DNA from: Penicillus capitatus
Taxonomy: Eukaryota; Plantae; Chlorophyta
Direction of reading: 5' to 3'
Length of the DNA stretch: 64,000 nt
Assembly: GCA_965649825.1 (NCBI GenBank)
Contig: OZ287709.1
Location: 124,001-188,000 of the forward strand
The notes under the pieces: model-generated
The model's database searches: none
Told to the model about the DNA's origin: nothing
Seen by the model: only the letters and a program-made list of their open reading frames with translations
Program-made: the position numbers and the translations under genes
Shown here: positions 13,599-63,529 of the stretch, in pieces
How the letters are laid out: every line of letters starts with the position of its first letter
How positions within the stretch are numbered: position 1 is the first letter of the stretch

Positions 13599-16460
13599 CT
13601 ATTTAAATAGAACCTGAACGTCATTGTCCAGCGATGCTGTCTGCTCGATATCCACAGTCAATTCTCCACTTCCCCTTTCGTATTGGAAAGGCACACTGCT
13701 GGCATTCACCCACACATCGACGGGTTTCTTGCTCGAGTACATGAGAAAGGTGCCGCATCCTTTGATAGAGATATCAAAGAGCGTGCATCGATCCGTCGTT
13801 GTCATTTCCAGCAGTTGCAGTTGCGATGCAGGGTTCTGTTTTGAATGGTCGTTATCTTCGCCTCTATGGCTCCATTCAATTTGCAGCTGACTCACTTTCA
13901 CACGTCTTCCGGCACAAGATCGCACCGCTCCTGAGCCATTGAGAAGGTGTGGAAAACCGATGGCAGCGAAATCCACTCGAGCCACCCGTAAGACAGGAGT
14001 GAAGGACACGATCTCGCTGCCGTAAGCGGGAAGCTCAACACAGAGGCAGATATCTTCCCCGCCCACAAAAAACTGTTTCTTACGGAAAGCGTAGGCCACA
14101 TACTTTCCATTGAATAGACGATGCTCTTCGGCCATCGATGCCAAACACTCCACATCGTGTGGACTCACTCTGGCTTGCAGACTCGGTGGTTTGGCATTGT
14201 GTGTCCTGAACTGCCTGAGCTGCCGATCCCACGAAGCTCCTTGCAAATTGAAGACGCCCACGATTCCCGAAAGCGCATTTCTGGTCCAGACCTTCAACAG
14301 CGTGCGGCCGTCCTTGAGCGTATTGCGAAAGAGGCAATCTCTTGTGGGTCGTCCAGGCAACTGAGGACGAAGAATGGATCCGTCTGGCAGCACGAGCTGC
14401 GAGAGGATCTCAAAGTTGTGCTGATCTGGTTTGTCACTGATATAGATGGCACCTCCACTCACTGTCCTGGCAGCTGCATGGAGATCTGCCGCTCCATGCT
14501 TGGTCTGAAACATGTCCCAGTCGGGTTGCACCAGTGGGGCCAGAAACAACGAGTTGTATGCACAGTTTGCGATGTGAGGTGTCGTCGAGGCTGGATCTCT
14601 AGGATAGAAGTCATCTGATGCTCTAGCTATGGCAGTGTTCAGCATTCTGTAAAGATTCTCTGTTGAATGACACATGCAATTGATGACATGGTTCCCAGGA
14701 AAATGCTTCTCCACTGATTCCTCCAGTGCCATGTGCCACTTGTACGCCAATGCGGCGCCTCCGCCCAGGACACTCCCAATCATACCCACCCCTGCCTGGG
14801 CATCGACCTTGACACCGGTAGCTCCGGCAGATTTGAGATAATCATGCATGTCTAGGTACAGCTGTTCTGGACAGTCGACAACGCCCACGCCTCCGACCAC
14901 AGAAGGATTCCATGCCAAGGATGGCTCGACTTCCAGTATCCCAGGTGTGGGTTTTGCTTTTAGGACGCGTGGATGGTACTTTGCCATGGCTGGTTCCTCT
15001 TGACTGATGCCACTCCAGTATGCGGACATCCCGTGCCAGAGGTAGACATAGGCAACGCCCATTTCTGTCTTGAGAAATCGGATCACCTCTGCCAGATTCT
15101 CTTTTCGATTCCATTTCTTATCTTCAGCTGCATTCGGAGACGAAAACTTTCCGTTTGCCTTGACAGAGACAAGACGTCGACTGAAATCCCCAGCCATCGC
15201 ATAGAAATTGAGCAGAGGCTTGCGCAACGGACCGTTTGCTAAATATGTAAACATTCGTACTCGGGTGGATCCTGGAGGGGCTTTGTCCACCAACCACTCG
15301 TAGGCCAAAAGACAAGCAGATGACATGAAGCCCACCAGAGATCCAACCATGCGCTGAATCATGCTCACCGCTGCTTTCACTTCCTCTTCCTTCTCATCGT
15401 ACTCATCTTCGTCTTCTTCCACGCCACTGGGCTGAGGACCCATGGCAGACAACGTTGGCATCACGACATTTGCTGTTTGATGCGGTAAATGTGCCGATGC
15501 CTCTGCTAATACCTCTGTCTCAGCAAGGGTACATTCGGCTTCCGTTTCGTATTGTTTTGGCAGCTTAAGTGGCTCTGTTGGTGCCATCTGCTCGGCCTGA
15601 TCGAGAGCGGTCGTTTGCCAACCGTCGTCGATGATGAGCAGCTTGGGAGGAAAACCGCCGTCTTTTAGCGTCTGCAGCCCTTCCTTGATCCCTTTGGCTG
15701 AGACAGTACTGTAGAAGGCATCCCATGTGCACCATCCAAAAGCATCTAACGATTCCGGCAAGGTCTTTTCGGTTCGTGGTCTGGCCCCTCCCGAGAGCTT
15801 AGCTGCAGAGATAACAGCCCGGTCGACTAAGGAATAGGGATTCCATCCTGCAGCGACGTAGAGAATGGAGTTAAATTTGTTTGCCTTGACGCTCTCATCT
15901 CCACTCTCCACCCGCAGTATCATCTCCTGATCTCCAAAAGGGAGATACCTGTCACATCGCTCACCCATCATACGAGTTACGCATCGAGGACAGTACTTTG
16001 GTGGACGAATGGTCGCGCGATAGACGCTTCTGTCAATCAACGGTAGCAGAATGGCATAGGGTCCCCCCTCTCGCACTTCCATCAACAGAAACTGCGTTTC
16101 TGGTGTCAGGTCTCGAGCCGAACTCCCCCATTCAGGTGTCATCCACCAGAGCTTGCAACGTGCCGATGACACAAATCTCTCGCAGTCCAGTTTGCCTAGT
16201 GTAAAATCTTCCATGTGTGTCATTCCATTCTTGGAATTGAATCCCAACACCACGTCTCCCTCGAGTGACTCGGACTGATTCAAGAACGCAGCAGCATCAA
16301 CACCTTCCACCAGTGTCAGTCCCAGATGCGTCACCACGTTTCCATCATGAAAGGACAAAGGAATCCTGTCACATCGTTCCTCAGATTTCGCTGCTGCTTC
16401 TGGAGAGGCGAGTTCCACAAAATTCACGCCTGAACTTTCGCCTAGATCATCATCACACAT
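13599..16460 (-). CDS. Raffinose synthase / seed-imbibition-type alkaline alpha-galactosidase (GH36)
   Basis: Motifs KLWWMTPEWG, FGWCTWDAFY, LLIIDDGWQ, GVKVDAQ, NCMCHS, RASDDFYP and PDWDMFQ. At least one in-frame short intron is probably included in the ORF. Confidence 0.93.
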   Translation of the reverse strand: MCDDDLGESSGVNFVELASPEAAAKSEERCDRIPLSFHDGNVVTHLGLTLVEGVDAAAFLNQSESLEGDVVLGFNSKNGMTHMEDFTLGKLDCERFVSSARCKLWWMTPEWGSSARDLTPETQFLLMEVREGGPYAILLPLIDRSVYRATIRPPKYCPRCVTRMMGERCDRYLPFGDQEMILRVESGDESVKANKFNSILYVAAGWNPYSLVDRAVISAAKLSGGARPRTEKTLPESLDAFGWCTWDAFYSTVSAKGIKEGLQTLKDGGFPPKLLIIDDGWQTTALDQAEQMAPTEPLKLPKQYETEAECTLAETEVLAEASAHLPHQTANVVMPTLSAMGPQPSGVEEDEDEYDEKEEEVKAAVSMIQRMVGSLVGFMSSACLLAYEWLVDKAPPGSTRVRMFTYLANGPLRKPLLNFYAMAGDFSRRLVSVKANGKFSSPNAAEDKKWNRKENLAEVIRFLKTEMGVAYVYLWHGMSAYWSGISQEEPAMAKYHPRVLKAKPTPGILEVEPSLAWNPSVVGGVGVVDCPEQLYLDMHDYLKSAGATGVKVDAQAGVGMIGSVLGGGAALAYKWHMALEESVEKHFPGNHVINCMCHSTENLYRMLNTAIARASDDFYPRDPASTTPHIANCAYNSLFLAPLVQPDWDMFQTKHGAADLHAAARTVSGGAIYISDKPDQHNFEILSQLVLPDGSILRPQLPGRPTRDCLFRNTLKDGRTLLKVWTRNALSGIVGVFNLQGASWDRQLRQFRTHNAKPPSLQARVSPHDVECLASMAEEHRLFNGKYVAYAFRKKQFFVGGEDICLCVELPAYGSEIVSFTPVLRVARVDFAAIGFPHLLNGSGAVRSCAGRRVKVSQLQIEWSHRGEDNDHSKQNPASQLQLLEMTTTDRCTLFDISIKGCGTFLMYSSKKPVDVWVNASSVPFQYERGSGELTVDIEQTASLDNDVQVLFK

Positions 16461-19285: not shown

Positions 19286-19672
19286 GAGATGCTGTGATGC
19301 ATTGCTGTGTGCCATCGATCTCGAGCGAATATCTTAGAGTGTAAGGTACACGGCAGAGTGGCGCTGTTGGCACTGTCATCTAACCCCTCGTACCGATAGG
19401 GCGCGTGCGCAACAGCCCTTTGCACTCCGTTCTGCAGAAAATGATCATTCACACCAAACGGCACTGAATGGCACCGCCATTGGCGCTCACACGAATTAAA
19501 AAGAGCGTAGGCCAGGATAGGAAATCGGTTGATCGTATGGAGTGAGTGCGATGAAAACGGAAACGTCCCATCAAAGGAACTTCGTCGTGCTGCCGGACAA
19601 GGAATCAGCAACGAATCGTTGCGCAAGAATACCAGTCTCTATTCACGACAGCACCAAGGAAAGCAGGCAGTG

Positions 19673-21112
19673 ATGGAGTCCCCAAGTTCGTCGATACAGA
19701 ACTCCGAACAGCAGCGACTCGTTCCGCTGTCGGTGTCCTACCAAAACGGTATCGACGTTCCATCCCTGCTACGAAAAATGCACAAGCGCCTGTTGCCTAT
19801 CTGTGTCCTCATTCTCGTCTTTGCGAACATCGACCGAGGCAATCTCGGCTTCGTCGCGAATCAACTGTGCCGTGACCTAGACCTGACCCAGACGCAGTAT
19901 GGTATAGGGGCCAGCATCTTCTTTGTGGGAATCCTCTTCTCTCGCATTCCAAGCAATCTCGCCATGCGCTATTTCGGCGGGCCATTGTGGTTAGCGATCA
20001 TTGTCTTCTCGTGGGGCATTCTGGCCACCGCCCTCGCTTTCATCACACACGTTTACCATTACTACTCGATTCGATTTCTGTTGGGCATTGCTGAGGGCGG
20101 CGCTTTTCCGGGAGTCTGGTACTATGTCACGATGTTCTTTCCGGATGATCATCTCACATTTCCTTATGCGTTTACCTCCAGTGCTGCTCCAATTGGAAGC
20201 GCATTGGCCGGTCCTCTGACGACCATGTTCACGCTGACGGAAGGTCTGTTTGGCATCGAATACTGGAGATACCTCTTTTTCGTCGAAGGAATCGTCCCGG
20301 CAATGATCGCTCCCTTTCTGTACTACACGCTTCCACGAGACATCGAATCTGCATCGTTTATCCAGCCGCACGAGCGTCTCTGGCTTCAGACCAAGAGAAA
20401 CCGTCTGCACGATGGGAAGTATCGCACCTTCCTGGAGGAGCTACAGATCCTGGTCATGCGTTCTTCCTTCTGGCTCTTCAACTGCTTTTCCGTCGTGCAT
20501 CTCGTCCTCTTTACCGTCGTTCTGTACTGGACGACGCTGATGATCGAGGACAGCTTTGCCGACGACGAGAAAAAAGACTCTGAAACGTGTGCGTCTTCGC
20601 GTTCTTTGGGCCTGGTCTCCATCATCCTCACTTCTGTCGTCTTCATCACATGCACCGTCGTGACTGGAGTTCTGGGATGGTTGGCCAGGAAGTCCACCAA
20701 CCGAAACCGCATCGCCGGCTGGATAACAGTCATCGGCGGCGTTTCCATGGCGCTGTGGACAGTCGGCAATCTGGTGCACAGAGTGCTGGGTCTGATCTTG
20801 TTGACCATTGTCGCCTGTGCCATGAATGCACCGACATCTGTGGCAGTGAGTCTGTATGTGAGTGCCTTCGATGCTCGTATGAAATCGACTGCCCTGTCTG
20901 TTATGTCCACCATTGCCACATTGGGTGGACTCTTTGGACCCGTCTTAGTCGGCGCCATCGTCGACCATTACGATAACTACCACGCAGCTTCGGTAGTTGT
21001 TGGCGTTATTGGTATACTGGGCGGATGCTCGGTTCTGATGATACAAGATCCGTTGAAGAAATCGGGGAACAGCGAGAGCGAAAGGGAGGAATGTGATTTG
21101 CGCACGGCGTGA
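19673..21112 (+). CDS. MFS transporter, anion:cation symporter (TtuB/Dal5-like), intronless
   Basis: RKMHKRLLP, IDRGNLGF, IPSNL, RFLLGIAEGGAFPG and WRYLFFVEG; about 12 hydrophobic segments. Confidence 0.9.
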   Translation: MESPSSSIQNSEQQRLVPLSVSYQNGIDVPSLLRKMHKRLLPICVLILVFANIDRGNLGFVANQLCRDLDLTQTQYGIGASIFFVGILFSRIPSNLAMRYFGGPLWLAIIVFSWGILATALAFITHVYHYYSIRFLLGIAEGGAFPGVWYYVTMFFPDDHLTFPYAFTSSAAPIGSALAGPLTTMFTLTEGLFGIEYWRYLFFVEGIVPAMIAPFLYYTLPRDIESASFIQPHERLWLQTKRNRLHDGKYRTFLEELQILVMRSSFWLFNCFSVVHLVLFTVVLYWTTLMIEDSFADDEKKDSETCASSRSLGLVSIILTSVVFITCTVVTGVLGWLARKSTNRNRIAGWITVIGGVSMALWTVGNLVHRVLGLILLTIVACAMNAPTSVAVSLYVSAFDARMKSTALSVMSTIATLGGLFGPVLVGAIVDHYDNYHAASVVVGVIGILGGCSVLMIQDPLKKSGNSESEREECDLRTA

Positions 21113-21681: not shown

Positions 21682-23209
21682 ATGGCGCATCCTATACAAA
21701 CGCTTTTATTGTATACAGCGACGAGACGGTCGGAAGTGGCGGGATCTCGATGTCCATCGGGGGAGGCAACAGAAGCGGTGCCCCGTCTTCGGGCAAAACC
21801 GCGCGGAAAGCTGACAGCCGAAGCCATCAAGGCGGAACTGACAGCGCTCAAGAATCCAGTCAAGACACCGCCGCCGCCGCCGCCAGCAGAACGACCGACC
21901 ACACCGCTGAAGCCCATTGCGCGACGATTGACCGCACCTGTACATGAGAGTCCCAATAAACCAGCAGCACTACCTCTGAAATACAGTCAACTGTTAGAAA
22001 TGTTTAGTAAGCATCCTCGCACGTCACATCATCTTCAGATCGAATTCTCGATGCTGTCAGAGCATTTACAAATGGTCTATCGCATTCGTACAACGAAGAG
22101 TATTTTCTTAACCTTTGCCGATGCCAAGGCTGCTATCCAGAAAGCCACACGAAAGACCTTCTCGGTAAGGACAGACGATGTCATACAGGACGACCATTCA
22201 TGCACCTCTGTCATCATAGATCAAGCATCTGGCGAAAATGAAGTATATGATACCCGAGATACTGCAGTGGCAGTATATGGAAGGCACGAGCGATACCTTG
22301 GCATCGGCACGACTGATTATCCGTCTGGAACCGCTCTCCGGAAACGACCGTGGAGGCATGGAAGACATGGCGATGTATGGAGAACTGCGAAATCGTTTGG
22401 CGCGTCACGCCCGACGCGCTGCCCTCATTGGCAAAGAGACTGAAGAGATTCCGGAGGCCGAACTGCCCGATCCATCCCTCTCTGTCCTCGTCTCGACCAG
22501 CAAAGCCCTCTCGGGGCGTTCCTGGTCTAACGCTTCATCGGGATACCGTTCCAAATCCCCGTCCAGTGTCAAACCACGACGCAAGACGTCTTCCTTCACG
22601 CCGATCAAACGCCTTGAGATGTGCTCGAATTTTGAGACGCCGAGGCGACTGACGTCAGTGACAGAGGTGACAGAAGGCGGCGGAGAATCGAGCTGGTCGA
22701 AACCGGTGACGCCTCACAGTGGAACTGCCGCTTCCCTTTTCTCTCCCTGCAGTCATAATCGAGGCATCCTCCGCGAGAGTTTCAAGAGACGTATGCTGAT
22801 GTCGCCGAGCAAAGTCAAGGAACGTGCACGGCATCATGCCATGGCCAATCTCATCACAGCCTTGAACGATATCCGTGCCGTCTTCCATCGTTTCAAGACG
22901 ACAAAGCGTCCCCTAAAAGACGTCCTCCACGCCATGCGTATCCACACCAAGAGCAAATACACAGAAGAAGCAGCGCAGCTGCATTTGCAGTTGCTTCTGG
23001 AGTACGCCCCTCAGTTTGTGTGTCTCGATGGCGATGCCGATGGGAAAGAGATTCTCTCCATCAACAAGGAATGCAATCTGCCTGCTATCAAAGAGATGCT
23101 CAAAGAAATGGCAGAGCAGCGTCCCAAGGTCGAAATCTCGGATGCCGTGGTGGAGAAACGCCTTTCTGAACTCGACATGTTCCAACAACAGAATCAGGAC
23201 GGTGAATGA
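21682..23209 (+). CDS. CDT1: DNA replication licensing factor Cdt1-like
   Basis: Pro/Lys-rich N-terminus, LPLKYSQLLEMF, TFADAKAAIQKATRKTF...HLAKMKYMIPE, and C-terminal winged-helix-like HLQLLLEYAPQF. Confidence 0.8.
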
Positions 23210-23253
23210 AGGGACATGTCACGATCGCATGCGTTCGTCTCTTTTTTTGCCTG

Positions 23254-25183
23254 ATGCATCGTGTCTCCGAACGAGTGCGCGTCTCGCGTGGCCACCTGGT
23301 CGTCCCGCCATTCGATTGCGCCTGGCTCTCGGACGCCGATTCGAAGCTCGATAACGAACGCGGCTGTGTCGTTTTTGAAGTATCAGGTGAAACGGACGCG
23401 ACGATTATTCTTCAGTCCAAACCGGGCTCAAGACGTCTACCGCTGCAGACCTCTACCGAATCGAATGGCCGTTACGTCATTGTCTTCGGAAGTCATCGCA
23501 ACAGTCGGCTTAGCATCGAACGGAATGAAGATAGACAGGCGACTGTGCGCGAATCGTGGGCGCAGATTTCCCCGGACTGTTTTCGCAAGTTCTGGATGTG
23601 TTACGTATCCGGTGTCATGTACTTTGGCACAGGAGACCCGTCTATGAGCTACCAGTACAGATGGGAAGATACCAATCCCCTCCACAACATCCATTTCGTG
23701 GGGCTGAGTGCATGGGACAAGCACTGCACCTTTAGGAATGTCCGTGTCCTGCCTTGTCTGCCATGGCTGGAGATCCATCAACACATCCCTTCTCTCTTTG
23801 ACATTTCGACATCCTTCTTGTCGAGGCACATGGATCTGCATGCCGCTTGTCAAGTGATGCTGATTTTGGATCGACTGCAAATGCCGTCGAATGTTGGTGA
23901 ACTGTGGAAGAAGGCGGTGTCTGTCGTGGCCCACGATTTTGAGACATTCCTTGTGCATAACCGAGATGCTTTCTGTCAGATGTCGAGCGACGCCGTCTGC
24001 GCTCTGCTCAAATCTCCAGCACTGGTTCGTAGCTCTCTCTTACTTGCTGTGATGGCACCTCTTGACGATCATCATCGCATATGCGAGGTGCGTTGGCTGA
24101 CATGTTTGTGTTGGCAGTCGTTGGACGAACGTTCGGTGTTCCATGCAGTTGTCTCATGGATGTTCTACGGAAGGCCAAGCAATCACCTCCATGCCATTCG
24201 ACCTCCCAACGAGATCAAAAACGTCATCAAATGGATCCGATTCACCACGATCGAGACAGAAGAACTCCAGGCATCGACGACCCCTCGATCACGGCTGGGA
24301 GCATTGACTAGCGTGTCTGTCCCGCTTCAGGTGATGCTCGATGCGGCGCGGCAGATGGATTCGGTAGAGCTCAGCGGTGCCATTCAGAATGCTCTGGTCG
24401 TGCAGTCGTTTGCTTCTGGAAGCGCCGTGGGGCTCACTGCAGAAAACGTTGGGATGAGTGGGAACGAGATTTCGCAGGGTCAGTTGGACATCGATATGTT
24501 CTGGACGCGATCTGCCCGAAACGGCGTTCAGCTTCAGTACTACTATGATGGAGACAAGAAAGGCGTTGTTAATTATTTGGCACACAGTTGCGGTCAGAAA
24601 CCGTGGAGGAATCCGATGCTGAACAAAAAACTCCTCGTCAAGACCAGCAGTCCTCCCAGCAGATCCACCAGTCCAAAAGCAAACATGCCGCTTCTCTAGA
24701 CGCCATGGATCGACGCTTTCTGTGATGCAGGACATTGTCAGCGAGAAATTCCGCGCCACGAATTTTGCTGGTCCCAAGCGGACGCAGTCGGGTCTTGAAA
24801 CGTGGTGGATGATCGATCTGCTTGACTACATGCTCATTTGCAATTACTACACCGTGAAGCACGACGCTTCCACAGATTTCGCGCGCTGGTGGGATTTTCA
24901 AGTAACGAACCAACCCCCTCAGCACTGCGCCGCCGTAAGATACTGGTCATGATAGGCGTCAAATGATGGAGAGACATGGGTGGTGTTGAGACGGCATGAG
25001 AACGATTGCACCATCAATGCACCCAAGGCATACGGCTCATGGCCGATCTATTGCAACACGAAACCGTATAGAATGTTTCGTCTTTTGCTCACGGGGCCAA
25101 CGGAGAGCCAAGTCGCCCCACGCAATATGGCGCTCAGCAATTTGGAGCTCTATGGCATGCTGGGAGGACCCGGTATTGCCTGA
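23254..25183 (+). CDS. At2g30600-like protein (FAMeT-like N-domain, BACK, C-terminal F5/8/discoidin-like)
   Basis: PPFDCAW, YVIVFGSHRNSRL, VGLSAWDKHCTFRNV, LQYYYDGDKKGVVNYL, WWMIDL...LICNYYTVKHD and W.VLRRHEND...YRMFRLLLTGP. Confidence 0.82.
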
Positions 25184-49451: not shown

Positions 49452-49561
49452 TGTCGGATTGATGGGCGATTTTAGAAATGATGGGACATCTTGCCTGACA
49501 GGACATGAACAGGGCCTGTGTTTGACTTTTTAAGAACAGAGCATGCGTGAGTTTTTTGACA
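49452..49561 (+). repeat. 5' LTR (110 bp)
   Basis: Sequence identical, read base by base, to 54245-54354. Confidence 0.96.
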
Positions 49562-52500
49562 TGGTTTCGGAGCGAGTTCGCCGCGTGTATCTAATCTCTG
49601 TCTACTACTTTTGGTGTTATGTGATATCGAAGTGGACGCTGCAAGTTTTAGAGATCGAGATTCGCGGGCCGAGACTCGAAGAATTTTTTCACGACAAAGA
49701 CTCATGCGATGTCTGCGCGTCGCGCTTCGCGTGCCTCATGGATGACTTGCGAAGGCGCATTGGAATGGTGGTGACTATGGCCACTGAAGCGTGGATGCGC
49801 AATGGGGCGTCATGGCTTGAACTCATTTTCTGGATTCAAATCACAGTTCTTGCGTGGAAGGTGACATGTTTCGTCTGGCGCTGCACCGACGTTGGCTTTA
49901 CGGCGGCGGTCGAAGAAGTGATGGATGGGTGGAATCGAAACGTCGCGAACTTTACGGACGGACTCAGAGGTGCATTCGTAAGGGCGACTGTCAGACCCGT
50001 CCGAAGCGTCAACGCAGTTCAAGACACGACCGTGTCTCTGCCGCCAGCGAACGCCAACCCACGTCCTTCGTCGGCATTTCATGGAGTGAAGCTTGACAGG
50101 TGGAACAGAGACTGGCACGAGCGAATTTTCAGGACCCTCGAGTTTGAGTGTCCAGACGTTTGTGTTCGAGTCCGAACTCTCACGGCAGTATTCGACCCGA
50201 AGTCCGTATTTGGGGAGTCTATGCTCGAAATCATTCGTTCAGGATGTCTCGAGTATCTGCCAACGCAAGAGCTCCCGGAAAACGAATTCGGACTGGAGGA
50301 TGACATGCGAAGGAACCTGAGGAAGATGTGGTCAGAACTGAAAGCGCTTTTCGAGCGCATGTGCTTGGAGGATGATGCGGAGAGCGATCAGATCAAGACG
50401 CTGAGTCGAGTAACCAAGATGCACGACGAAACGAGACTCGCCTTTGCCTATCGATTCAGAACAGTCCTACGACTGAGATGCACCAATGTGCAAGAGAAGA
50501 CAGGTCTGGAGATGATTCTCAACCAGTTAGACCGTCCCTTCCACGAATTTCTGCGCACACAGCACTTTCGGGAGGGCCTGACGATGGAAGCGGTGATCAT
50601 GGCAGCCAAGCAGTTTGAACAATGGGATCCGAAATTGGCGACCGGCTTGCCCCACTCCGATTCTCAGCGTACGTCATCGGCAGGAGTGGCCAACCAAGGA
50701 TCGGTTCTAGTGACAAAAAGAAATGACCAGAACCATCGGAAAGTGTGGCAGGTTCGATGTCAGATATGCGATAAGCTTGGACACAACGCTAAGTCATGTA
50801 ATAAGAGAAAAGAGTTGAACTACCCGAGCGTGCTTGCTGGCGACGGAAACGGAATGAATCATGAACAGAGCGATGTTGTGATGCCGAAAGGTGGCGAAGG
50901 ACAATCTCTGTTGCTGCATTTGTCGACGAGCGTGTGGTCGGCAACAGAAGACAAACAAAAGATTCGTTTTCTTATTGATACTGGTGCTTCTGTGAATCTA
51001 TTACCGACTCGGCTGGTTAAGAAGCACGCATGGGCATTGAACGATTCAGAGAAAATCCATGTGCTTTCCTACACTGGTCAAAGAGATGAGTCGCAAGGTA
51101 CTGTATGTCTCAACGTGATACTCGGAGATGTTACCAAGGAACTCGTCTTCCATGTTGTTTCTGTCGCAAAGGAGCCAATTCTTGGTTTGGATGGCCTCTC
51201 TGCTCTCGGCGCCGTCATTGATTGCGAGGCGAAATCAATCAGAATGCCTTCCGGGAGATCGATCATGTGTTCAGAGGTACATGAAGCTCAGCGAATCCAT
51301 CAGTGCAAGGTCTTTATGTCAAAAGAAGCAGCAGAACAAAGTCAGCGAACGGAAAATGAAAAAGCGACGCAAGACAAACTGTCGATGGTCGAAGATGAGG
51401 ACCGTGGAGTACTTCCCTTTAGGAAAGGGAACTTGGTCTATTGCCCTTCGGGCAGAAGTCTCGTACTGAGTCCGCAAGAAATGACTCTGGTTCAACTTCC
51501 CTACCACGTGGACACGCACGACATCATTCTCGCAAGTTCTGGGAATACTGGAAGCAATATTGCGGTGATTGGAAGCGCAAAACAGAGGCGCAGAGCTCTA
51601 AAGTATCATGCAATCAATCTCGGAAAAAGACCTGAACACGTCGGAAGCAAAAATGGACTAGCTTGTTTTGAGGTGCAACCGGATCAACAAGTTGAGTATC
51701 GAAAGATCGACGGCACCGTTGTCATGATACAAGAAAATAGGAAGGGTGATTCTGAATGTGTGTCGGCCACGTGCTGTTCGATGAGACCTGCCGATGAGGA
51801 AAACGACGAAGTCAGAAAATGGCAAAGAGAATTCCCAGACGTGCTGACGCTAAAGATGGGGAAGACGACACACTACGAGGTTGATGATAGCATGATCAAA
51901 ACGGACGTTGAATGGGGGAAACTGAAGCCAAGAGCGTACTCAGCTGCAGAAAACCGAACGCTCGCTCCTTTGGTTCAAGAACTTCTAGATCTTGATGTGA
52001 TTGAGAAGGTCAGAAAGCGTCCTGAAGTTTCAACACCCATGTTGGTGGTCGCAAAGAAAGACGGAAAGATGCGACTCGTCCATGACTTTAGACTTCTAAA
52101 CTCTGTGACCAGTATGATGCAGAATGTGGCGATGGATAGAATGAAGATCCTTGCGTCTGTAAGGAAGCAGGAGGTGTGGACATCTTTAGATCTACAGAAA
52201 GGATTCATGCAGGTACCTCTTCATGAAGAAGTCCGAGGTGTTTTTGGTTTCGAGTTTGATGGGTGCTGGATGCAGTTCAAACGGTGTCCATTTGGCTGGG
52301 TCAATTCGATGCAACACTTTTGTACTGCAATGCGCATGACGCTACAAGAGGCGAGAATGGAGATGCCAAAGGGAATTACGCTGGAGTCGTACGTTGACGA
52401 CATTCTTCTTGGGACGTCAACAGCCGTGCACGACGATGCACTAAGGATCTTGTTCCAGTGGCTGCGGCAACATGGATGGACTGTAAATCCGTCGAAGGCC

Positions 52501-54255
52501 ACCATCAAAACGACCGAAGTTGATTTTCTCGGTCACCATTTCGACGCTGAAGGAATCGAGTTGTCTTCGGGACTCATCACAAAACTGAACGAGCTGATCA
52601 TGCCGCGTAACAAACAACAGCTGCGCTCATTCTTCGGCCTTTGCATTCAGCTAGAGAAATTCGCGTGGAAACTCAGAGATTCGACGGCAAAGCTGGAACC
52701 CTGGCTGAAAAAAGCTCCGAGAGAATTTGAAGGATCCGAATTCAGGGAGATGTGGAACCAAGTGATCAGAGAGGTTTCAGAACGCATTGTGAAGCTGGGG
52801 TATCCAAGCGAAGACGAAGATCTCGAGGTTGCAGTCGACGCATCAGGAGACGGAATTGGAGCGGTTTTGATGAGTGGCGGACGGCCCATTGCCTTTTTTA
52901 GCCGAAGAACTACCAAGCAATGGAGGCACAGCTCAGATTCAGAAATTGACGGAGTATTGAAGGCTCTCCAAGCGTTTCAGATGTTTATCGCATGTCGGCC
53001 AGTCAAGGTACTGACTGACAATTGGTCAGCATACCGCATTGCAAATCCGCTGAACTGTGGAGCACCGGTTCTGAGGCGCATCGAAGAGATCCTTCAATTC
53101 AATCCAAATGTTGAATTCGTCGCGGGAAAAGACAACACATTCGCTGACTTCTTGAGCAGAGATTTGTACATGCTGCAGCATGGTTCAGAAGGCAAGAGTG
53201 GAGGTTGTGGCCGAGCAAACGCAGTTGATCAGGATGTCGAGAGTGATAAGCTCCTGGAGATTCACGAAGAGGCCAAGAAGATGCATGAAGAGGGCCACGC
53301 TGGCTACCGCGCCATCAGAGCAATGTTACACAGAAAGGGACTGGAATGCAAGGGAATGGCGAAGGTCATACGAGATGTCGTTGATAGCTGCGACGTGTGC
53401 AAGAGGTGGAGAAAAAGGGAGTTCAGAGAAGATTTCTCGTTCAACGAAGCCACTGAGATCTCCGCTGTCGTTGGCCTGGATTTTGTAGGGCCGTTGAAGG
53501 CTATCAGAGGACGCAAATCGAGGCATTTGGCTGTAGCTGTAGACGGGCTCAGTCGACTGATGATGGCCATCCCGGTGAAGAGTTGTTCGACTGCCGAAGC
53601 GCAAAAGGCAGTGAAGGAGTGGCAGAAGGAACACGGGAAGATAAAGTGCTTGGTCACTGATGCAGGATCGAGTTTCTCATGTCGAGACTTCAAGGACTTC
53701 TGTGACAAGCAAGGCGTCAATCACAAGATGGCAGCGCCAGGTCATCAAAGTAGTAATGGTTTGGTCGAGAGAGCAATCCAAAGCCTCATGAATCGAGTCA
53801 AGAAGGTCTGTTTTGGTAAACAGCGAACGTGGGACCGTGTTTGGAGAAACGCTGTGAAGAACTATAATGAAACACCACATGGAATTACAACATTCTCTCC
53901 AGATGAGTTACGCTATGGGGATTCTTGTGGAGCCTGGATGGATGAAGAGGAACTTCTGAAGGCAAGGAAGATCGCAGTTGCGAAGACAAGAGCCCACCGA
54001 GAAGTGTGGCAACGCGGACGGCAGAAGAATGTGAAGTCTCAACATCTGGAAGTCGGCGACAGGGTTCTCAGATATGATCCTGGAGGTGGAAAGTTAGAAC
54101 CTCAATGGTCTGGACCTTTCAATATCTTGGAGATTCCTCACCCTCGCTTATATCGTATCTCCCAAGCACCAGTCGGAAGCAGAGCAAAAGGAGTTGTTAT
54201 ACACGGTGATGATCTGATGAAGGTCACCAATGCACAGGGAAGCGTGTCGGATTGA
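49543..54255 (+). CDS. Gag-Pol polyprotein (1570 aa)
   Basis: CCHC knuckle CQICDKLGHNAKSC; protease FLIDTGAS; RT SLDLQKGFMQV, PFG, YVDDILL; RNase H VDASGDGIGAVL, TDN, ADFLSR; integrase H..GH..C..C, GLDFVGP, TDAG, NGLVER and the GPF motif WSGPF. No chromodomain. Confidence 0.97.
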   Translation: MREFFDMVSERVRRVYLISVYYFWCYVISKWTLQVLEIEIRGPRLEEFFHDKDSCDVCASRFACLMDDLRRRIGMVVTMATEAWMRNGASWLELIFWIQITVLAWKVTCFVWRCTDVGFTAAVEEVMDGWNRNVANFTDGLRGAFVRATVRPVRSVNAVQDTTVSLPPANANPRPSSAFHGVKLDRWNRDWHERIFRTLEFECPDVCVRVRTLTAVFDPKSVFGESMLEIIRSGCLEYLPTQELPENEFGLEDDMRRNLRKMWSELKALFERMCLEDDAESDQIKTLSRVTKMHDETRLAFAYRFRTVLRLRCTNVQEKTGLEMILNQLDRPFHEFLRTQHFREGLTMEAVIMAAKQFEQWDPKLATGLPHSDSQRTSSAGVANQGSVLVTKRNDQNHRKVWQVRCQICDKLGHNAKSCNKRKELNYPSVLAGDGNGMNHEQSDVVMPKGGEGQSLLLHLSTSVWSATEDKQKIRFLIDTGASVNLLPTRLVKKHAWALNDSEKIHVLSYTGQRDESQGTVCLNVILGDVTKELVFHVVSVAKEPILGLDGLSALGAVIDCEAKSIRMPSGRSIMCSEVHEAQRIHQCKVFMSKEAAEQSQRTENEKATQDKLSMVEDEDRGVLPFRKGNLVYCPSGRSLVLSPQEMTLVQLPYHVDTHDIILASSGNTGSNIAVIGSAKQRRRALKYHAINLGKRPEHVGSKNGLACFEVQPDQQVEYRKIDGTVVMIQENRKGDSECVSATCCSMRPADEENDEVRKWQREFPDVLTLKMGKTTHYEVDDSMIKTDVEWGKLKPRAYSAAENRTLAPLVQELLDLDVIEKVRKRPEVSTPMLVVAKKDGKMRLVHDFRLLNSVTSMMQNVAMDRMKILASVRKQEVWTSLDLQKGFMQVPLHEEVRGVFGFEFDGCWMQFKRCPFGWVNSMQHFCTAMRMTLQEARMEMPKGITLESYVDDILLGTSTAVHDDALRILFQWLRQHGWTVNPSKATIKTTEVDFLGHHFDAEGIELSSGLITKLNELIMPRNKQQLRSFFGLCIQLEKFAWKLRDSTAKLEPWLKKAPREFEGSEFREMWNQVIREVSERIVKLGYPSEDEDLEVAVDASGDGIGAVLMSGGRPIAFFSRRTTKQWRHSSDSEIDGVLKALQAFQMFIACRPVKVLTDNWSAYRIANPLNCGAPVLRRIEEILQFNPNVEFVAGKDNTFADFLSRDLYMLQHGSEGKSGGCGRANAVDQDVESDKLLEIHEEAKKMHEEGHAGYRAIRAMLHRKGLECKGMAKVIRDVVDSCDVCKRWRKREFREDFSFNEATEISAVVGLDFVGPLKAIRGRKSRHLAVAVDGLSRLMMAIPVKSCSTAEAQKAVKEWQKEHGKIKCLVTDAGSSFSCRDFKDFCDKQGVNHKMAAPGHQSSNGLVERAIQSLMNRVKKVCFGKQRTWDRVWRNAVKNYNETPHGITTFSPDELRYGDSCGAWMDEEELLKARKIAVAKTRAHREVWQRGRQKNVKSQHLEVGDRVLRYDPGGGKLEPQWSGPFNILEIPHPRLYRISQAPVGSRAKGVVIHGDDLMKVTNAQGSVSD
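49562..49573 (+). promoter_or_regulatory. Primer-binding site, initiator tRNA-Met-like
   Basis: TGGTTTCGGAGC abuts the LTR and matches the classical TGGTATCAGAGC at 10 of 12 positions (one difference can form a G:U wobble). Confidence 0.65.
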
Positions 54256-54354: not shown

Positions 54355-57300
54355 CATGGTCTTGCGTTGAAACTTATCAAAGAGACCAACCGAAATGAAG
54401 CTGCTGATGATGCTGCTCGCACCGTAAAGGGCGCTGCCGATGATGGCGCGATCCATTCCAGCGTTCTCGAAGATCGTCGTCGTGTAGGATGCCAGTATGT
54501 TAACGCCGCAGAGCCGGGCCACAGTCGGAACACCGATCCCCAGGATGACACAGTGACGATACTTCGGTTTGAATACCAAGATGACCTTTCTCTTGAAGGT
54601 TGTCCATGCAGTCACGAACGGAAGTCTTTTTTGAAGTGGTTTTTGAATCGGTTTTTCGTCTGTTGTAAGAGGCAATGTCCCGTTCGTTTCGCGGGGACCC
54701 TCGTTTGCTGATGAATGAGAATCTGCAGCAGCTTCGTTCTGTTCTGTCGCAGGCTGAAGCTCGATGTCTTGCTTAGATATCTTCTTGCTAAAGTCCTTTC
54801 TCACTTCTTCAATGGACTGGCGAAAGAGTGGAAATGTGAGAAATGTCAATGCACACTAAACGAAAGAATGTAAGACAAGCGCGAGACGCAACAGGTCGAT
54901 TACTTGAACAATGGGTGGCACCGAAACGCAGAGAAACATGAGTCGCCACCACTCGTATCCTCCGATCCTAAAGCTCTCATCGAACTCGTACGGAATGCCT
55001 AGCAGCAGCCCGAAGAACACGCCAATAGTCTGGGCCAACTGCGACACTGGATGAAGAAGAGTGAGATAGAATGAGAGAAGGCGTACCTGGGAGCAAGCTC
55101 CAATTTTTCCTCGTATCTCTGGAGGCGAGACTGTTGCCAGATACCTGGCCACACAGATATCAAACAAAAAATCTCTCCTGCCATGTCGTACTTTGGCGAG
55201 ACGACGAGCATGAGACCCAACGCAAATCCGGTTAGAATGCGCGCCGCGAACAACATGCTGGTAACGCATCCATCGAACGGCCCTCCCCAACAGAACTTGT
55301 GGTCTGCGGTGAGGCCGGCGATGATGTTGCCGCACGCGTACAACACGCCGATCCACAGCTGCGCGAATTTGCCGCTCGCTTTTTCGAATGGCCCAGCTAC
55401 GAGTCCGCCGAGCATGGCACCAACGTAGAAGATCGATGAGACCGCGGCACCTCCGACGTTTTTCTCGAACGTCAAATCCTCGGACAGGTTATCGAGCATC
55501 GTGTTGACGATGACGAGTGCGATGCCTGCGGGCACTGCCGCATGAAACAACCGAACATAAAACCGTCGGCAAGCCCTTACCGAAGTTAAATGAACCCAGA
55601 AGGGCGATGAGGATTGCCGTGTAGACACGCCACATTTTTCTCTGCCCGGATGGATGCGCGGTCCGTGTTTGAAGTGAACTGGTCTGGTGTCCACGATGGA
55701 GTCAACTTCCGCTGATGTCGTTGCCGCCGCGGCGTATCCTTTTTTGGTCGTCATCAAGACGTCTACGGCGCAATTATCATTAAAAAAATGAGAGTCTTCG
55801 ACTAAGATCGAAAACTGCCAGCTGTCCGTTCCATGCACCTGTAGAGAACGCATATGCACACAAAGCTCCGACGAACCATCAGTAGACGCATCTGTGCAGC
55901 TCGATGTCTCGTCCACGCCGCGGAAAGCAAACTCGTTTGTCACGTCAACTATGTTCTTTCTCCATGCTGGACATTAACGTGCTGAAAGGCCACACGTGCA
56001 TAGCTGCAGTTTAAACAGGAGTGTACGAAAACCAGTGCTGGAATTCCAGCTGCCGTAATGCATTTTTGCAGCAAAAGTGTTGCGTGTGACAGGAATGAGA
56101 TCTTACCAACTTTAGTGAAATGACCCTGCGTGTTGATGCAGAGTCTTTCATTTCAGGTACTAGTGAATGGAAGACAAGAACCGTTCTACCTGTTTAATGA
56201 AAACCCAATCGCGACGACTTCGTCGACAACTTTTTTGACGACTTTGATGCCTAAGGACGTTCGTTGCTCACACGACAACTCTTGACAACTTCTGCGACAT
56301 CCGGTTCGTTTTTCCTTGTTTTAGAATTTACAACAACTCTTTTCACTTCTAGAAGCGTGTTCTTGCAGACGACAACTTCCACTTTGACGATGAGGAAGGG
56401 AGGAAGACAAGGGGAGTGACAGCGTGGATAATTAGACGCCTTTTTCTGCGAATCAACCGGATAATGATTCTTTGCATGTATTGGAAAGCAAAATGCGTTC
56501 GCAAAAGAGACCAAAGCGGGACACTAGATAGCCGCAAAGTCGTGTCAAATGTATTCCGATGCAAGTGCAAACATCCATTCCAAACGTGTTCAGGCTAAAT
56601 AATGTAATAGAGAATGCGCTTTCCAATGAGTTAAGATAAAAGGCCATGTGGGACCGAAGCGACCTTTCCTTTCATCATCTGCTTGTCCACCCAACCGAGA
56701 CTCGCAGACCTGCAGGAGACTCCAGATTTGTTAAACAAGACAGCGTGGGACTGCTGCGTCTTGAAGTATCGCTACCAGAAGGCCGCTCCGCCGGGTAGAG
56801 CAACATCGGTGATCGCAGCAGCGACCCTCGGCGGGCCTGAAAGAATCGGTTCAATGCTGAAGGTCGATCGCGATCCGCGGGGCATCGAAGCCGGGTGAAC
56901 GGCAACTACCAGACAGCGTTTCGACGCGAGGGGTGAAGCGTCGTGCGTGTCCTTGGAAGGACTCCACGCGGGGACGGGTTGAAAGCACCGCAGATATCAT
57001 GACCTGGAGTGCACCAATCGTTTTGACACCACGATCGATATCCAGGACACAGAATGGCAGAGCATTTGATCACAGGTAAACCATTTTGCGTCGACATCGA
57101 CAGTCTCGGGCGTCCTCGGACACCCTGCCAAGCAAGCCTCGTCCTACATGAGCATCTGTAGATCGAATTCCTAAGTCCGTCGATCCGCATAACGCTACTG
57201 AAACCCAGGATCTGTGCTCTCTGACATCATATGGTGTTCGAGAGTACATCTACGATTCTAGATGAACAATGGCCGTCATCACTGCAGCCACTCCGAGAGA

Positions 57301-59331: not shown

Positions 59332-61486
59332 GGCTTCGGAAGAAAACGTGACGTGCCTTGTCAGTAACTGTGCATAAATTAAATACTAGGCAGTTGAACG
59401 ATGCACACGAAAAGTAAACGTATCGGGCGTCATTTTGACACGTTTGAATGATGGACAGCTGAAGGGCGCGCTGTTGCTACAGATGAAGCGAAAGTCAACC
59501 GTTACGGAATACGAACGCCGTTCGGACGCCGAGGCCAGACAGCGACGCTGCGGTGCATACATTGTTATGGAGTTGTGCTGTACCAGATGGGGCTGAAACG
59601 TGCCAGCAGTCTACGCGCTTCGCTGTTCGACCTGTGCGTTTCAGTCCAACGCAATGTCGAGACTCCCACAGTCCTTTTTACTCGTTTAAGGTGCTAAACA
59701 TCAAACACAAGATAAGAGACCGTAAGCGGAGTTGTCTGAATGACCCCGCTAACATTAACAGTTTGGCGTAAGGTAACGAGACTGAAGTTGTCTTCGTTTG
59801 CGATTTTTTTTGGGTACTATCCCGTGGCCACTTTCCTATGGCCGTGATGCTAAAGAGACGGCACTTCTTCCGCAATCGCATACTCGACGATTGTTTTCCA
59901 AAGCCGCTGCTGTTTTAGCCGAACTGTCTAACACAAGAAGGCGATCTTCTATAACGTAATGAACAGTTGAGAGACATTTGTTTCGGAGCAAGGGAGTAAT
60001 GGGTGGTTTCCTTCTCACTTCTTATCGGAGACTACGTTGGATCATTCTATTCGTCAAGACATTTATCCGCCATTCTCTACAATCACTAGAAAACTTGTTA
60101 AACAAAAGAAAAACACCGATAATGTTTGTTCTCGTTTGGCTATCTCGATTTCGTTGAGGCCACTAAAATCTAAGTCTTCTCTTTCCTAGGAATGAGATTC
60201 TCTTCTCGCACTTCTGGCTCAGCTAAAGACTGTAATAAAGCAACTAGAGTTTGTCGGATAAAAGCTAAGAAGACGGAAATGCCTTACACGTAAATGGTTT
60301 GTATTTCATCACTCGACACGATTGGCATCATAAAGATCTTCTATTTCTGTTAAAACACCACAGAACTGACACCATACGTAGACTGCTTTGTTTGAAGTTG
60401 CCGAACAAGGAGAACTAGAAAAAGATCGATTCATTTTCCATGAGCGGTGTAGAAATAAAGGTTATCCGACTCTTAACCAGATCTAACGATTCATGCACTT
60501 CATATTGCTTCTAACTTCAGGATGGAAAACGAATACAGCAAGCTAAGATGGAACCAATCCGATATTTTCAGAAGTAAACACGAATGTTGTGTGAAAGCTG
60601 CGAAATCTCTGTATCTAGATTGGACTGCATAATCGCATATTGGCAAAAATTGTTTTGGTAACTTGTAGAAGAACATGTCTACTGCTGCGATAAGTTTTTT
60701 AAAATTTGAATCTTTTAATCATCGAGCACAAATGTTAACTCTAGAGTGATTTACTCGAATTGGAACTTTGTTCGGCTCTCTTTTGAATCGGCTTGCTATT
60801 CTATGTACTATAGCGTTGCAGTAATCATCACTATCCTTCTCTGTCAGCGGAAATCTCTGGCCTCGTAAACACTTGTCTACATTCCTTCATCTAAAGCTAT
60901 TACATCTTGAACCTAAGAGGACTTCGGACAGCATCATCCTGATAAGATGACTAATCATTCAACAAACTCATTGAAGTTGCCACATTTCCGTTACTTCTTA
61001 TCCTCTGACCAAAGAACCCCATTCTTAATCCAGTCGGTATTGCATGGCAATCTGTTTAACCATGAAAGTCAGAACTATAATCAAATCTGATGTCTCTTCG
61101 AATTCCAAACTGCAATACTTCTTATGAAGCCTAGATTAATAAACAGCATTAAAAATCAGTTCTCCCTTTTTTTCTCGGTTCCTTCAGAAGAATAAATCGA
61201 AGTAATGTTGATTCTATACTCCAGCTCTGTAAAGAGTGGACAATATGAAAGAACTGTTCAGCATTTGTGATCTAGATTATACAGACGCGGAACGAACGAA
61301 TGAACACTGTTCTCCCTATCTTCAGTCAGCTGCAAAGCCGAGCAAGCACGATGTGACGCAATGTGACAACAGTAAGATATCGTGGAATTGAATTGTCAAC
61401 AATAGCTCGTGTCGTTTTGATGCGGTGTCTTACCTTCCGAGCTCTCCCTCAGAAACACATCAGCCTTAAGCAGCGAACGCAGCTTC

Positions 61487-63320
61487 ATGCCAGAGAATGG
61501 AGGACACGTTTTCTCAGGCGCTGCACCCGCAGCCGCATACGTCTCTGGCCAGTCAGGTCGCCATCTCACCTCTGTCGCTCCTCTTTCACGGACTTCGTTT
61601 CTCCGCAGAGCAGCTGTCTCGACAGACACAGATCTGTCCACAGAGTTCAGTAGCGATTACTCTGAATTCGTTGTCGATCTCAAGGCTCCTTATGGATTTG
61701 CCTTAGCCCCGGATCTTCTCGGCCAAGTTGCTTTTACTTCAAACCATTCCCTCTGCAATTTCTGTCGCTGTGCAGATCTACGTCGCATCCGTCGTTCCCC
61801 ATAGCTCGGCCGAAAAACAGCAAATTATGGTGCTGAGCCGTTCAATCCACATCCCTCAACACTGACACAGATCAATGGCAAAGGTGGGAGACATCTTCAA
61901 ACAGTGCACCTGTGCTCTCCAGCCTGATAAGGTCTGCGCCTACTCAGATCTGAGAAAGATCCAGTGGTCCATCAACAAAAACAAGGAACAACTACGTCTG
62001 GTTCTGAAACGGCAGCAGACGATGGGACGTATGCGATGGCATCGATGTGGCACATGTGGGTGTGTCTCCCACTCTTCCAGTTGGCTTATCTCGCCTCCGC
62101 ACTTCCCACCGATATCTAGTGGCGAATGGTGCAATAGACGAGAAGGCAAAGTCATCGTCGCCGCTTTTCATAAGGCCATCATCGAAGAGGTGAAATTGCG
62201 TGTCCTTCGCATTGTGCGTGTTTCTATTTGGGGCTTTAGGACGAGCACTGTCCGGATGAGAGTCGTCACGTTGGCAGAATGGCCAAAGCTGTGGATTTGA
62301 GATCGCGACTCCTGGATGCCCTACAGCTTCCCACACTCGTGTTGCCAAAATACTCTCTGGTACATCCATCGAGTGTGGATGAAGAAGATGTGGATGGCTG
62401 CTATGTTGACATGCTAAACGACGAAGCGCTGTCGAGTTTTGAACAGAGCCGAGTGGAAGAACAACTGAACAGCAAAAAAGTGTGACTCGTCCATACGGTT
62501 GCTGCTTATATAGATCATGGAATGTGTGTCTCCAGCTCATACCCATTCTTCCATGGCTTCAGGTGACAACGGGACGATTGGCCCAGCCAGATATTTTGGA
62601 ACTGGCCAGTCAATGTGCCCTGCAGTGTCTCCTGGAGCTACGGCTGCATCTGTGCGACAACGGTGTGGCGTTGGCTGGAGTGCCTTGTCAGAAAAACGAT
62701 CCAATTCTGGGACTGGTCATTTCTGCCGCCACTCTTCATCGACTGGTAATACGCCGAAAGGCGATGATGCGACAGGACATCCATTCCTGCAACGTGCTGC
62801 TTCACTGTGAGGAAGAAATGACAGCCGCCGTCGGGACATTGCTGGCGGCTTATTACTACTGGTTTGGAATGATCGACGTCGACGAGGCCATCAGCCTTGC
62901 CGAGATGGCCCTTACAACCACCATCTCCAAGGTGCAGAATTTTTGGAACAGAGAATGCACGTGTGGGATGGTCTGTGTCTTTAGGATCTGTTGCACGAGG
63001 CGTCTGATTTTCTGTACAGACAAGCGACAGAGAGATCGGAAACGGTTACCGTTTTGTGGCCTTATGGAGGCAACCATGTCCAGGTGGCAGGAGAATTGGT
63101 TGGAGGATGGGATCAGAGAGCGATCTTGCATCAGGCGCCATCGAATTTCTCTCCCTGTTTCAATATCCCTCCAGCTGCGCATTACCTCAGAGTCCGAGGA
63201 CTATCGTCCGGCACCTATCATTACAAATTCATTGTCGACAACCGATGGACGATCGATCGCCGAGCTCCGACAGATGCCGATCGAAGCGGCAACTGGAACA
63301 ATGTCTTGACGGTCAGGTAA
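61487..63320 (+). CDS. LSF1: LIKE SEX4 1 (LSF1)-type glucan-phosphatase homolog: transit peptide, PDZ-like, degenerate DSP, CBM48
   Basis: Spliced model gives FVVDLKAPYGFAL...IYVASVVPHSSAEKQQIM|VGDIFK...LRLVLKR (PDZ-like), LIPILPWLQ...VLLHCEEEMTA...AYYYW (DSP), and VTVLWPYGG..V.VAG...W...GTYHYKFIVDNRW...DADRSGNWNNVLTV (CBM48). The last codons are uncertain. Confidence 0.8.
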
Positions 63321-63529
63321 GCACCACACATTAGGGATGCTCTTTGCAGAGATGTGACAATAGGGAGAGATCTGTGGATCGCAGCCTGTTTCGACAGGAT
63401 CTCTGTCGGTCGTTTGCCGCGTCGATCGCGTTGCGTATCAAACGCACTTCGCGGAATCCGTCGTAGACAACTTACAACTTGCATCTGTCGACTCTTCGGT
63501 TTTGGATCGTTAGGTTCTTTGTGGATCCA

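Follow-up and report, generated by a model that had tools for sequence, protein, structure and literature searches.

A 64,000-nucleotide stretch of Penicillus capitatus DNA (contig OZ287709.1, positions 124,001 to 188,000; hereafter the window) carries, at positions 61487-63466 of the + strand, a gene that is very probably a chlorophyte orthologue of LSF1 (LIKE SEX4 1), an intact nuclear gene of the expressed type whose product would act as a non-catalytic adaptor on starch granules. Seven exons separated by six GT..AG introns of 47-56 bp encode a product of 556 amino acids (aa). The protein starts with an S/A/R-rich N-terminus, continues with a PDZ-like domain, a linker that contains a conserved helix, a degenerate dual-specificity phosphatase (DSP) fold, and a CBM48, and ends in a C-terminal helix. 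The original prediction, made from the DNA alone, had recognized PDZ plus DSP plus CBM48 as the LSF1 architecture, and this was upheld by the Pfam match of the CBM48, a family profile, profile-profile alignment with hhalign, and a Foldseek search. Plant LSF1 is non-catalytic and serves as a scaffold for beta-amylases (PMC11593807, PMC8968401). In Arabidopsis, it is required for starch breakdown and binds BAM1 and BAM3, and a BAM1-LSF1-MDH complex forms via its PDZ and interaction regions (PMC8968401, PMC11593807, PMC12892837).

The gene model was derived from a three-frame translation of positions 61400-63500, in which the coding segments switch frame at short GT..AG intervals and splicing produces a single open frame. 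It was compared to an orthologue found in the ENA metagenome assembly ERZ26696514 on two long contigs (loci L002 and L003; hereafter the metagenome relative). The features of the gene are as follows.

61487..61726, + strand: exon 1; ATG at 61487, presumed S/A/R-rich transit peptide (aa 1-54), after which the PDZ-like domain begins (aa 55, window 61649)
61727..61775, + strand: intron 1; 49 bp, GT..AG, splice sites kept in the metagenome relative, 82% identity, one indel
61776..61829, + strand: exon 2; PDZ-like domain, ...IYVASVVPHSSAEKQQIM
61830..61883, + strand: intron 2; 54 bp, GT..AG, retention would give an in-frame TGA
61884..62189, + strand: exon 3, uninterrupted; remainder of the PDZ-like domain (to ~62027), then a partly disordered linker with W-x-R-x-G-x-x-G
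62190..62239, + strand: intron 3; 50 bp
62240..62479, + strand: exon 4; encodes an acidic linker and the conserved helix (aa 207-227, ...LRSRLLDALQLP...) of the middle region
62480..62535, + strand: intron 4; 56 bp, 60% identity with indels compared to ~89% in the adjoining exons (metagenome relative)
62536..62931, + strand: exon 5; degenerate DSP fold (aa 280-431 overall), including the P-loop
62803..62829, + strand: P-loop HCEEEMTAA, aa 370-378, within exon 5
62932..62984, + strand: intron 5; 53 bp
62985..63316, + strand: exon 6; end of the DSP fold and CBM48 (aa 432-522, window 63042-63314)
63317..63363, + strand: intron 6; 47 bp, GTAAGC..AATAG, donor and acceptor kept in L002/L003
63364..63466, + strand: exon 7; C-terminal amphipathic helix (...QDLCRSFAASIALRIK...), stop TAG at 63464-63466

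Both ends of the model and its most informative join could be checked against relatives. At the 5′ end, the ATG at 61487 is preceded by an in-frame stop, and the start codon is kept in L002/L003. The join at intron 2 reads IM/VGD; its counterpart is IIMVGD in Arabidopsis LSF1 (AtLSF1) and IMMGD in Caulerpa. The junction segment AEKQQIM/VGDIFKQC aligned to ...AEKARIIMVGDTLKKAS of AtLSF1 (PDB 8j5d_D), with AEKQQ-IMVGDIF opposite AEKARIIMVGDTL. The proposal that removal of 61830-61883 recreates the IMVGD segment was therefore borne out by the frame, the AtLSF1 alignment, and the conserved splice sites. The 3′ end, originally placed at 63320, had to be moved. The TAA at 63318-63320 was ruled out as the stop since it sits within the conserved donor AG/GTAAGC, and a seventh exon leads to the stop at 63464-63466. 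Relatives extend ~35 residues beyond the position of 63320 and contain there a conserved helix, L-x-R-L-x-A-A-L. Exon 7 is 91-92% identical to the metagenome relative with zero indels, and it aligned to the C-termini of P0001 and P0002, the two closest relatives, and of streptophyte LSF1s.

Other candidate junctions were discarded. The alternative acceptor at 63351 has no AG in the metagenome relative, which keeps the acceptor at 63363. In exon 3, a 52-bp intron at 62029-62080 would break the frame; a 60-bp intron at 62060-62119 would restore it, yet Caulerpa and P0002 have no break there. Exon 3 was left continuous because both P0001 and P0002 read through it.

The metagenome orthologue is 86% identical to the window gene at the nucleotide level, with 12 of the 12 splice sites kept and the frame intact. 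The exons are 87-92% identical, and the sole exon indel is a 3-bp gap in the transit-peptide exon, whereas introns 3-6 are just 60-76% identical, with an indel in introns 3 and 4. Intron 2 stood apart from these in being 94% (51 of 54 positions) identical, above its flanking exons, which could be chance or could reflect a functional intronic element. The codon differences amounted to 115 synonymous and 42-43 non-synonymous changes, most of the latter in exon 1 and many of them in the N-terminal 40 residues. This points to purifying selection on the seven-exon model, and therefore the window gene is not a pseudogene. Upstream, a region of ~1.4 kb 5′ of the gene (window 60001-62000) has a GC content of 42% compared to ~50% elsewhere; alignment to the metagenome relative covered the gene and its 3′ flank and did not extend into this region.

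Affinity to LSF1 was evident at several levels of comparison. As a single sequence, the protein matched the Pfam CBM48 family PF16561 (AMPK1_CBM) with an E value of 1.6e-18 (67 bits versus a cutoff of 26.8), and the PDZ was weak (Pfam PDZ, E value of 0.21). Its top PDB chain was Arabidopsis LSF1 (8j5d_D, E value of 2.8e-8), matched at the PDZ-like segment (residues 4-54) and the CBM48. A family profile of 16 chlorophyte sequences matched the same chain at 1.9e-30, with independent E values of 5e-14 for the PDZ (residues 2-91) and 3.7e-13 for the C-terminal half of the DSP plus the CBM48; the values for other chains were 5e-8 for SEX4, 0.49 for LSF2, and down to 2e-5 for canonical PDZ structures. 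When the chlorophyte profile was aligned by hhalign to a profile of six streptophyte LSF1s, the probability was 100% with an E value of 1e-48; the alignment began in the PDZ, ended in the C-terminal helix, and comprised 495 collinear columns. In this alignment, aa 280-431 fell on the LSF1 DSP, the P-loops were in register with VLLHCEEEMTAAVGTLLAAYYYW opposite VYVHCTNGVGRSPAAAVAYLHW, and collinearity held for the module order, for the W..G..G motif that follows the PDZ, and for the C-terminal helix. Thus, the data fit the earlier suggestion that LSF1 predates the split between chlorophytes and streptophytes, and by these alignments such an early origin is supported.

Structural modeling gave a similar picture. 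An AlphaFold (AF2) model from 34 sequences had a mean predicted local distance difference test (pLDDT) score of 75, compared to an unusable 31 from a 3-sequence alignment. The PDZ, DSP, CBM48, and C-terminal helix (aa 533-552) were mostly above 85-90; by 10-residue blocks, the PDZ-like domain ranged over ~77-95 and the DSP fold over 81-97. The N-terminus and aa 144-201 were disordered (pLDDT of <50 at aa 144-201). The N-terminal 54 residues are rich in S/A/R/T, almost free of acidic residues, and fast-evolving, so a chloroplast transit peptide is plausible by composition. Foldseek placed SEX4 (3nme) first among structural matches of the AF2 model (E value of 1.3e-12, 313 columns), followed by AMPK beta CBMs (target-normalized template modeling [TM] score of ~0.9).

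Comparison to known systems shows what is shared and what has been lost. Arabidopsis LSF1 (At3g01510; 8j5d chain D) and other streptophyte LSF1s have the same module order as the window protein, including an N-terminal targeting region, although identity is only ~21-25%. They differ in keeping the PIRD D-loop, as well as a recognizable P-loop with its Arg (AtLSF1, TCTTGFDRS; Mesostigma, HCTNGVGRS); the window protein has lost the D-loop segment, the Arg, and the Gly. SEX4 is an active C6/C3 phosphoglucan phosphatase. SEX4 (DSP4; PDB 3nme, 4pyh) shares the run from DSP fold through CBM48 to C-terminal segment; however, it has no PDZ, its HCTAGMGRA loop and general acid are intact, and its sequence match is weaker than that of LSF1 (5e-8 versus 1.9e-30). 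The nearest full-length protein, Caulerpa lentillifera EP00210_P006582, is 56-57% identical, has the same architecture, and likewise lacks the Arg, with a P-loop of HCEEGMSSA. In chlorophycean members, the linker and the DSP region are expanded by long low-complexity inserts, whereas the window protein is compact, with three Glu in the loop.

Three acidic residues and the absence of the CX5R Arg had been read from the P-loop in the original prediction, and the alignments agree. Compared to HCTAGMGRA in SEX4, HCSAGLGRA in LSF2, HCTNGVGRS in Mesostigma LSF1, and TCTTGFDRS in AtLSF1, the window loop HCEEEMTAA keeps His370 and Cys371, but the next three positions are Glu, the Gly being replaced by Glu374, and the Arg is replaced by Ala377. 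The metagenome orthologue has exactly the same loop. The loop therefore fails the HCX5R(S/T) pattern of active PTP/DSP enzymes, which have both Cys and Arg. Furthermore, the general-acid Asp of the D-loop, ~30 residues before the P-loop, has no counterpart; the ...LLLHDPIRDFD... segment of LSF1 and SEX4 is deleted, and other chlorophytes have low-complexity inserts in its place. In the PTP/DSP mechanism, the Cys is the nucleophile, the Arg and backbone amides bind the phosphate, and the Asp is the general acid. Because this mechanism needs the lost residues, the window DSP domain is predicted not to bind or hydrolyze phosphate esters, and we infer from the loop that it is catalytically dead and that such hydrolysis would be impossible. 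The carbohydrate-binding surface has fared differently. The CBM48 equivalents of the AMPK beta carbohydrate contacts are kept (W454, K493, W500, and N517), and across the 16 chlorophyte sequences, K493, W500, N517, and N518 never vary, and W454 almost never does.

Proteins of this type were not confined to the window. An exhaustive HMMER protein search returned 914 proteins at an E value of <1e-3, 20 of them at <1e-30. Full-length proteins that combine a degenerate DSP with a PDZ-like domain and a CBM48 were found in Volvox reticuliferus (GIL77883.1), Chlamydomonas eustigma (GAX74509.1), C. euryale, Dunaliella salina (KAF5842673.1), Sanguina, Raphidocelis (GBF88665.1), Myrmecia bisecta (KAK9815611.1), Pycnococcus provasolii, and Caulerpa. 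Tetraselmis striata was listed with the same clade, and no PDZ-like match was found in its protein. The original prediction had described LSF1 as reported from land plants and absent from model chlorophytes, a view contradicted by the database proteins of Volvox, Chlamydomonas species, Dunaliella, and others, C. reinhardtii not being among the species named. All of the chlorophyte members are filed as hypothetical proteins, the one from C. eustigma as "PDZ domain-containing protein" in UniRef. The CX5R Arg is absent from every named member, and in several the Cys is gone too; the streptophyte LSF1s (Mesostigma, Mesotaenium, and Diphasiastrum), which stood lower in the same HMMER list, have kept the Arg. 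None of the open-access papers on LSF1 and algae describes a chlorophyte orthologue; the primary LSF1 papers lay outside this scope, and an earlier description is possible.

In a neighbor-joining tree of the DSP plus CBM48, with one SEX4 and one LSF2 as outgroups, the window protein grouped with Caulerpa (100%), and the chlorophyte clade was monophyletic (100%). We tentatively suggest that there is a chlorophyte-wide LSF1 clade, perhaps undescribed in print, that spans Ulvophyceae, Chlorophyceae, Trebouxiophyceae, Chlorodendrophyceae, and Pycnococcus and in which the phosphatase site is wholly dismantled, whereas Mesostigma keeps the canonical HCxxGxxR. Inside the chlorophyte LSF1-like clade of this tree lay an apparently uncharacterized group of paralogues (P0024, P0028, P0033, P0035, P0037, P0081, P0101, P0127, and P0130) that share the degenerate DSP, the CBM48, and the C-terminal helix (…ERLRLARFGAAILAYY…) and differ in the N-terminal region, where there is no PDZ-like domain.

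Some of the observations weigh against an orthologous, functional, and non-catalytic LSF1, and they have to be set against the other explanations available. The original prediction had itself raised convergent fusion, that is, an unrelated PDZ and a SEX4-like DSP-CBM48 joined in chlorophytes independently of streptophyte LSF1. The DSP region would allow this. By itself, it gave zero phmmer matches in the PDB as a single sequence, being too diverged to assign, and a DSP-only profile gave a weak signal without clear preference for LSF1 over LSF2 (19 bits for Mesostigma LSF1, 14 for AtLSF2, 6 for AtLSF1, and 2 for AtSEX4). The tree joined the chlorophyte clade to streptophyte LSF1 to the exclusion of SEX4 at just 62% bootstrap, with its single SEX4 and single LSF2. 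Global superposition of the model on SEX4 was also poor (TM score of 0.35, root mean square deviation of 16 Å), probably because the domain arrangement differs. However, the PDZ is LSF1-specific: a PDZ-only profile scored 47-87 bits on streptophyte LSF1s, and the family profile preferred AtLSF1 (5e-14) to the best generic PDZ (2e-5). The CBM48 likewise favors LSF1s (37-49 bits) over SEX4 (25 bits), and the module order, the W..G..G motif, and the C-terminal helix are collinear. Scored module by module, the direction is consistent, with the DSP by itself too diverged to decide. Given LSF1-specific character in the PDZ, the CBM48, the C-terminal helix, and the order of the modules alike, a convergent fusion is very unlikely; over the 495 hhalign columns, the modules are collinear and homologous with those of streptophyte LSF1. 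At the transcript level, the one sequence found is a transcript-like Logan contig of the relative P0002, not of the window locus. Even a decaying pseudogene, or an artefact of chance open frames, had to be considered, since the window gene is in no protein set and is on record solely as prokaryote-style open reading frame (ORF) fragments. This is highly improbable: two diverged genomes share a 556-codon frame unbroken over seven exons, synonymous changes are in threefold excess, the splice sites are conserved, and full-length relatives exist in Caulerpa and in that transcript-like contig.

The remaining explanation concerns the fold itself, which need not be inert if Cys371, in its acidic loop, served redox sensing, binding of cations or basic ligands, or an atypical hydrolase. 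With Cys371 in place, a redox function or some other one is conceivable; His-Cys is retained in the Bryopsidales and most Volvocales sequences, the loop is the same in two species 14% apart in nucleotides, and the degenerate domain is under purifying selection. On the other hand, the Cys is missing elsewhere in the clade (Raphidocelis, HH; Myrmecia, HS; Tetraselmis, QS; P0009, RL), and so it is not a family requirement. The Arg, the Gly, and the general acid are all missing, three Glu would repel phosphate, and no enzymatic activity was detected for Arabidopsis LSF1 (PMC8968401). Such a role is therefore unlikely.

The LSF1 orthologue is thus most likely a non-catalytic scaffold bound to starch granules, judging by analogy with the plant protein, and the earlier description of it as "purely a scaffold" is a reasonable inference. 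The CBM48 would dock the protein on starch granules, and the PDZ-like and linker regions would recruit partner proteins to the granule surface. This role is taken to be the same as that of Arabidopsis LSF1, whose partners are the beta-amylases BAM1 and BAM3 and plastidial MDH. A further point against a full equivalence is that the BAM1/MDH-binding linker of Arabidopsis shows no detectable conservation in the window protein, so BAM1, BAM3, and MDH are only candidate partners here. To our knowledge, functional studies of LSF1 have so far been limited to Arabidopsis and other land plants.

A second gene was used to place the host. An intron-less raffinose synthase gene at 13599-16460 (- strand; 953 aa; PF05691, E value of 8e-179) had its best matches in the ERZ26696514 relative (95%), in the EukProt model g6324.t1 (65%), which is presumably from Caulerpa judging by its numbering, and in Bryopsis sp. 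KO-2023 (54%), followed by other chlorophytes (40-50%). Land plants gave lower bit scores, with a local identity of 34-43% over just 31-56% of the query. Because, among named algae, both this protein and the LSF1-like protein match Caulerpa or Bryopsis best, the host is, as far as its proteins indicate, a chlorophyte of the Bryopsidales (Ulvophyceae) with Caulerpa as the nearest named relative. The proposal that the host is a green alga, and not a streptophyte, was thereby confirmed. The two genes may also have stayed together during evolution. By their numbers, the raffinose synthase model g6324 and the Caulerpa LSF1-like model g6287 are only 37 models apart, and both genes share one contig in the ERZ26696514 relative, which suggests a conserved linkage. 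Exact-sequence look-ups of the exon 1 ORF and the raffinose synthase ORF matched no record.

Several other genes were seen in the window. A single 1570-aa ORF at 49543-54255 (+ strand) contains reverse transcriptase, RNase H, and integrase and looks like an intact polyprotein of a Ty3/gypsy-type long terminal repeat retrotransposon. Major facilitator superfamily/sugar transporter ORFs lie at 3654-5033 (- strand), 19529-21112 (+ strand), and 54999-55943 (- strand), and more Sugar_tr genes flank the LSF1-like gene on the contigs of the ERZ26696514 relative. An ORF at 23206-24699 (+ strand) has a farnesoic acid O-methyltransferase-type domain (PF12248, E value of 1e-17), a family better known from arthropods.

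The window protein is an additional member of the LSF1 family, and the loss of the loop at the level of the clade, as opposed to the canonical loop of Mesostigma, makes a modest evolutionary point. Since homologues are already in public protein sets, current models are not changed. The range of LSF1 is extended to siphonous green seaweeds, and chlorophytes as a whole would have retained a protein of the LSF1 type whose active site is still more degenerate. This supports a non-catalytic selected function of LSF1, namely, granule binding and partner recruitment. If the chlorophyte-wide clade is real, LSF1 would have arisen from an active SEX4-like enzyme before the chlorophyte/streptophyte split, and catalysis would have been lost independently, and far more thoroughly, in chlorophytes; the paralogues without a PDZ would then represent a second undescribed family of starch-associated pseudophosphatases. 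The scaffold role and the identity of its partners would also become open to study in tractable algae such as Chlamydomonas relatives, Volvox, and Dunaliella.

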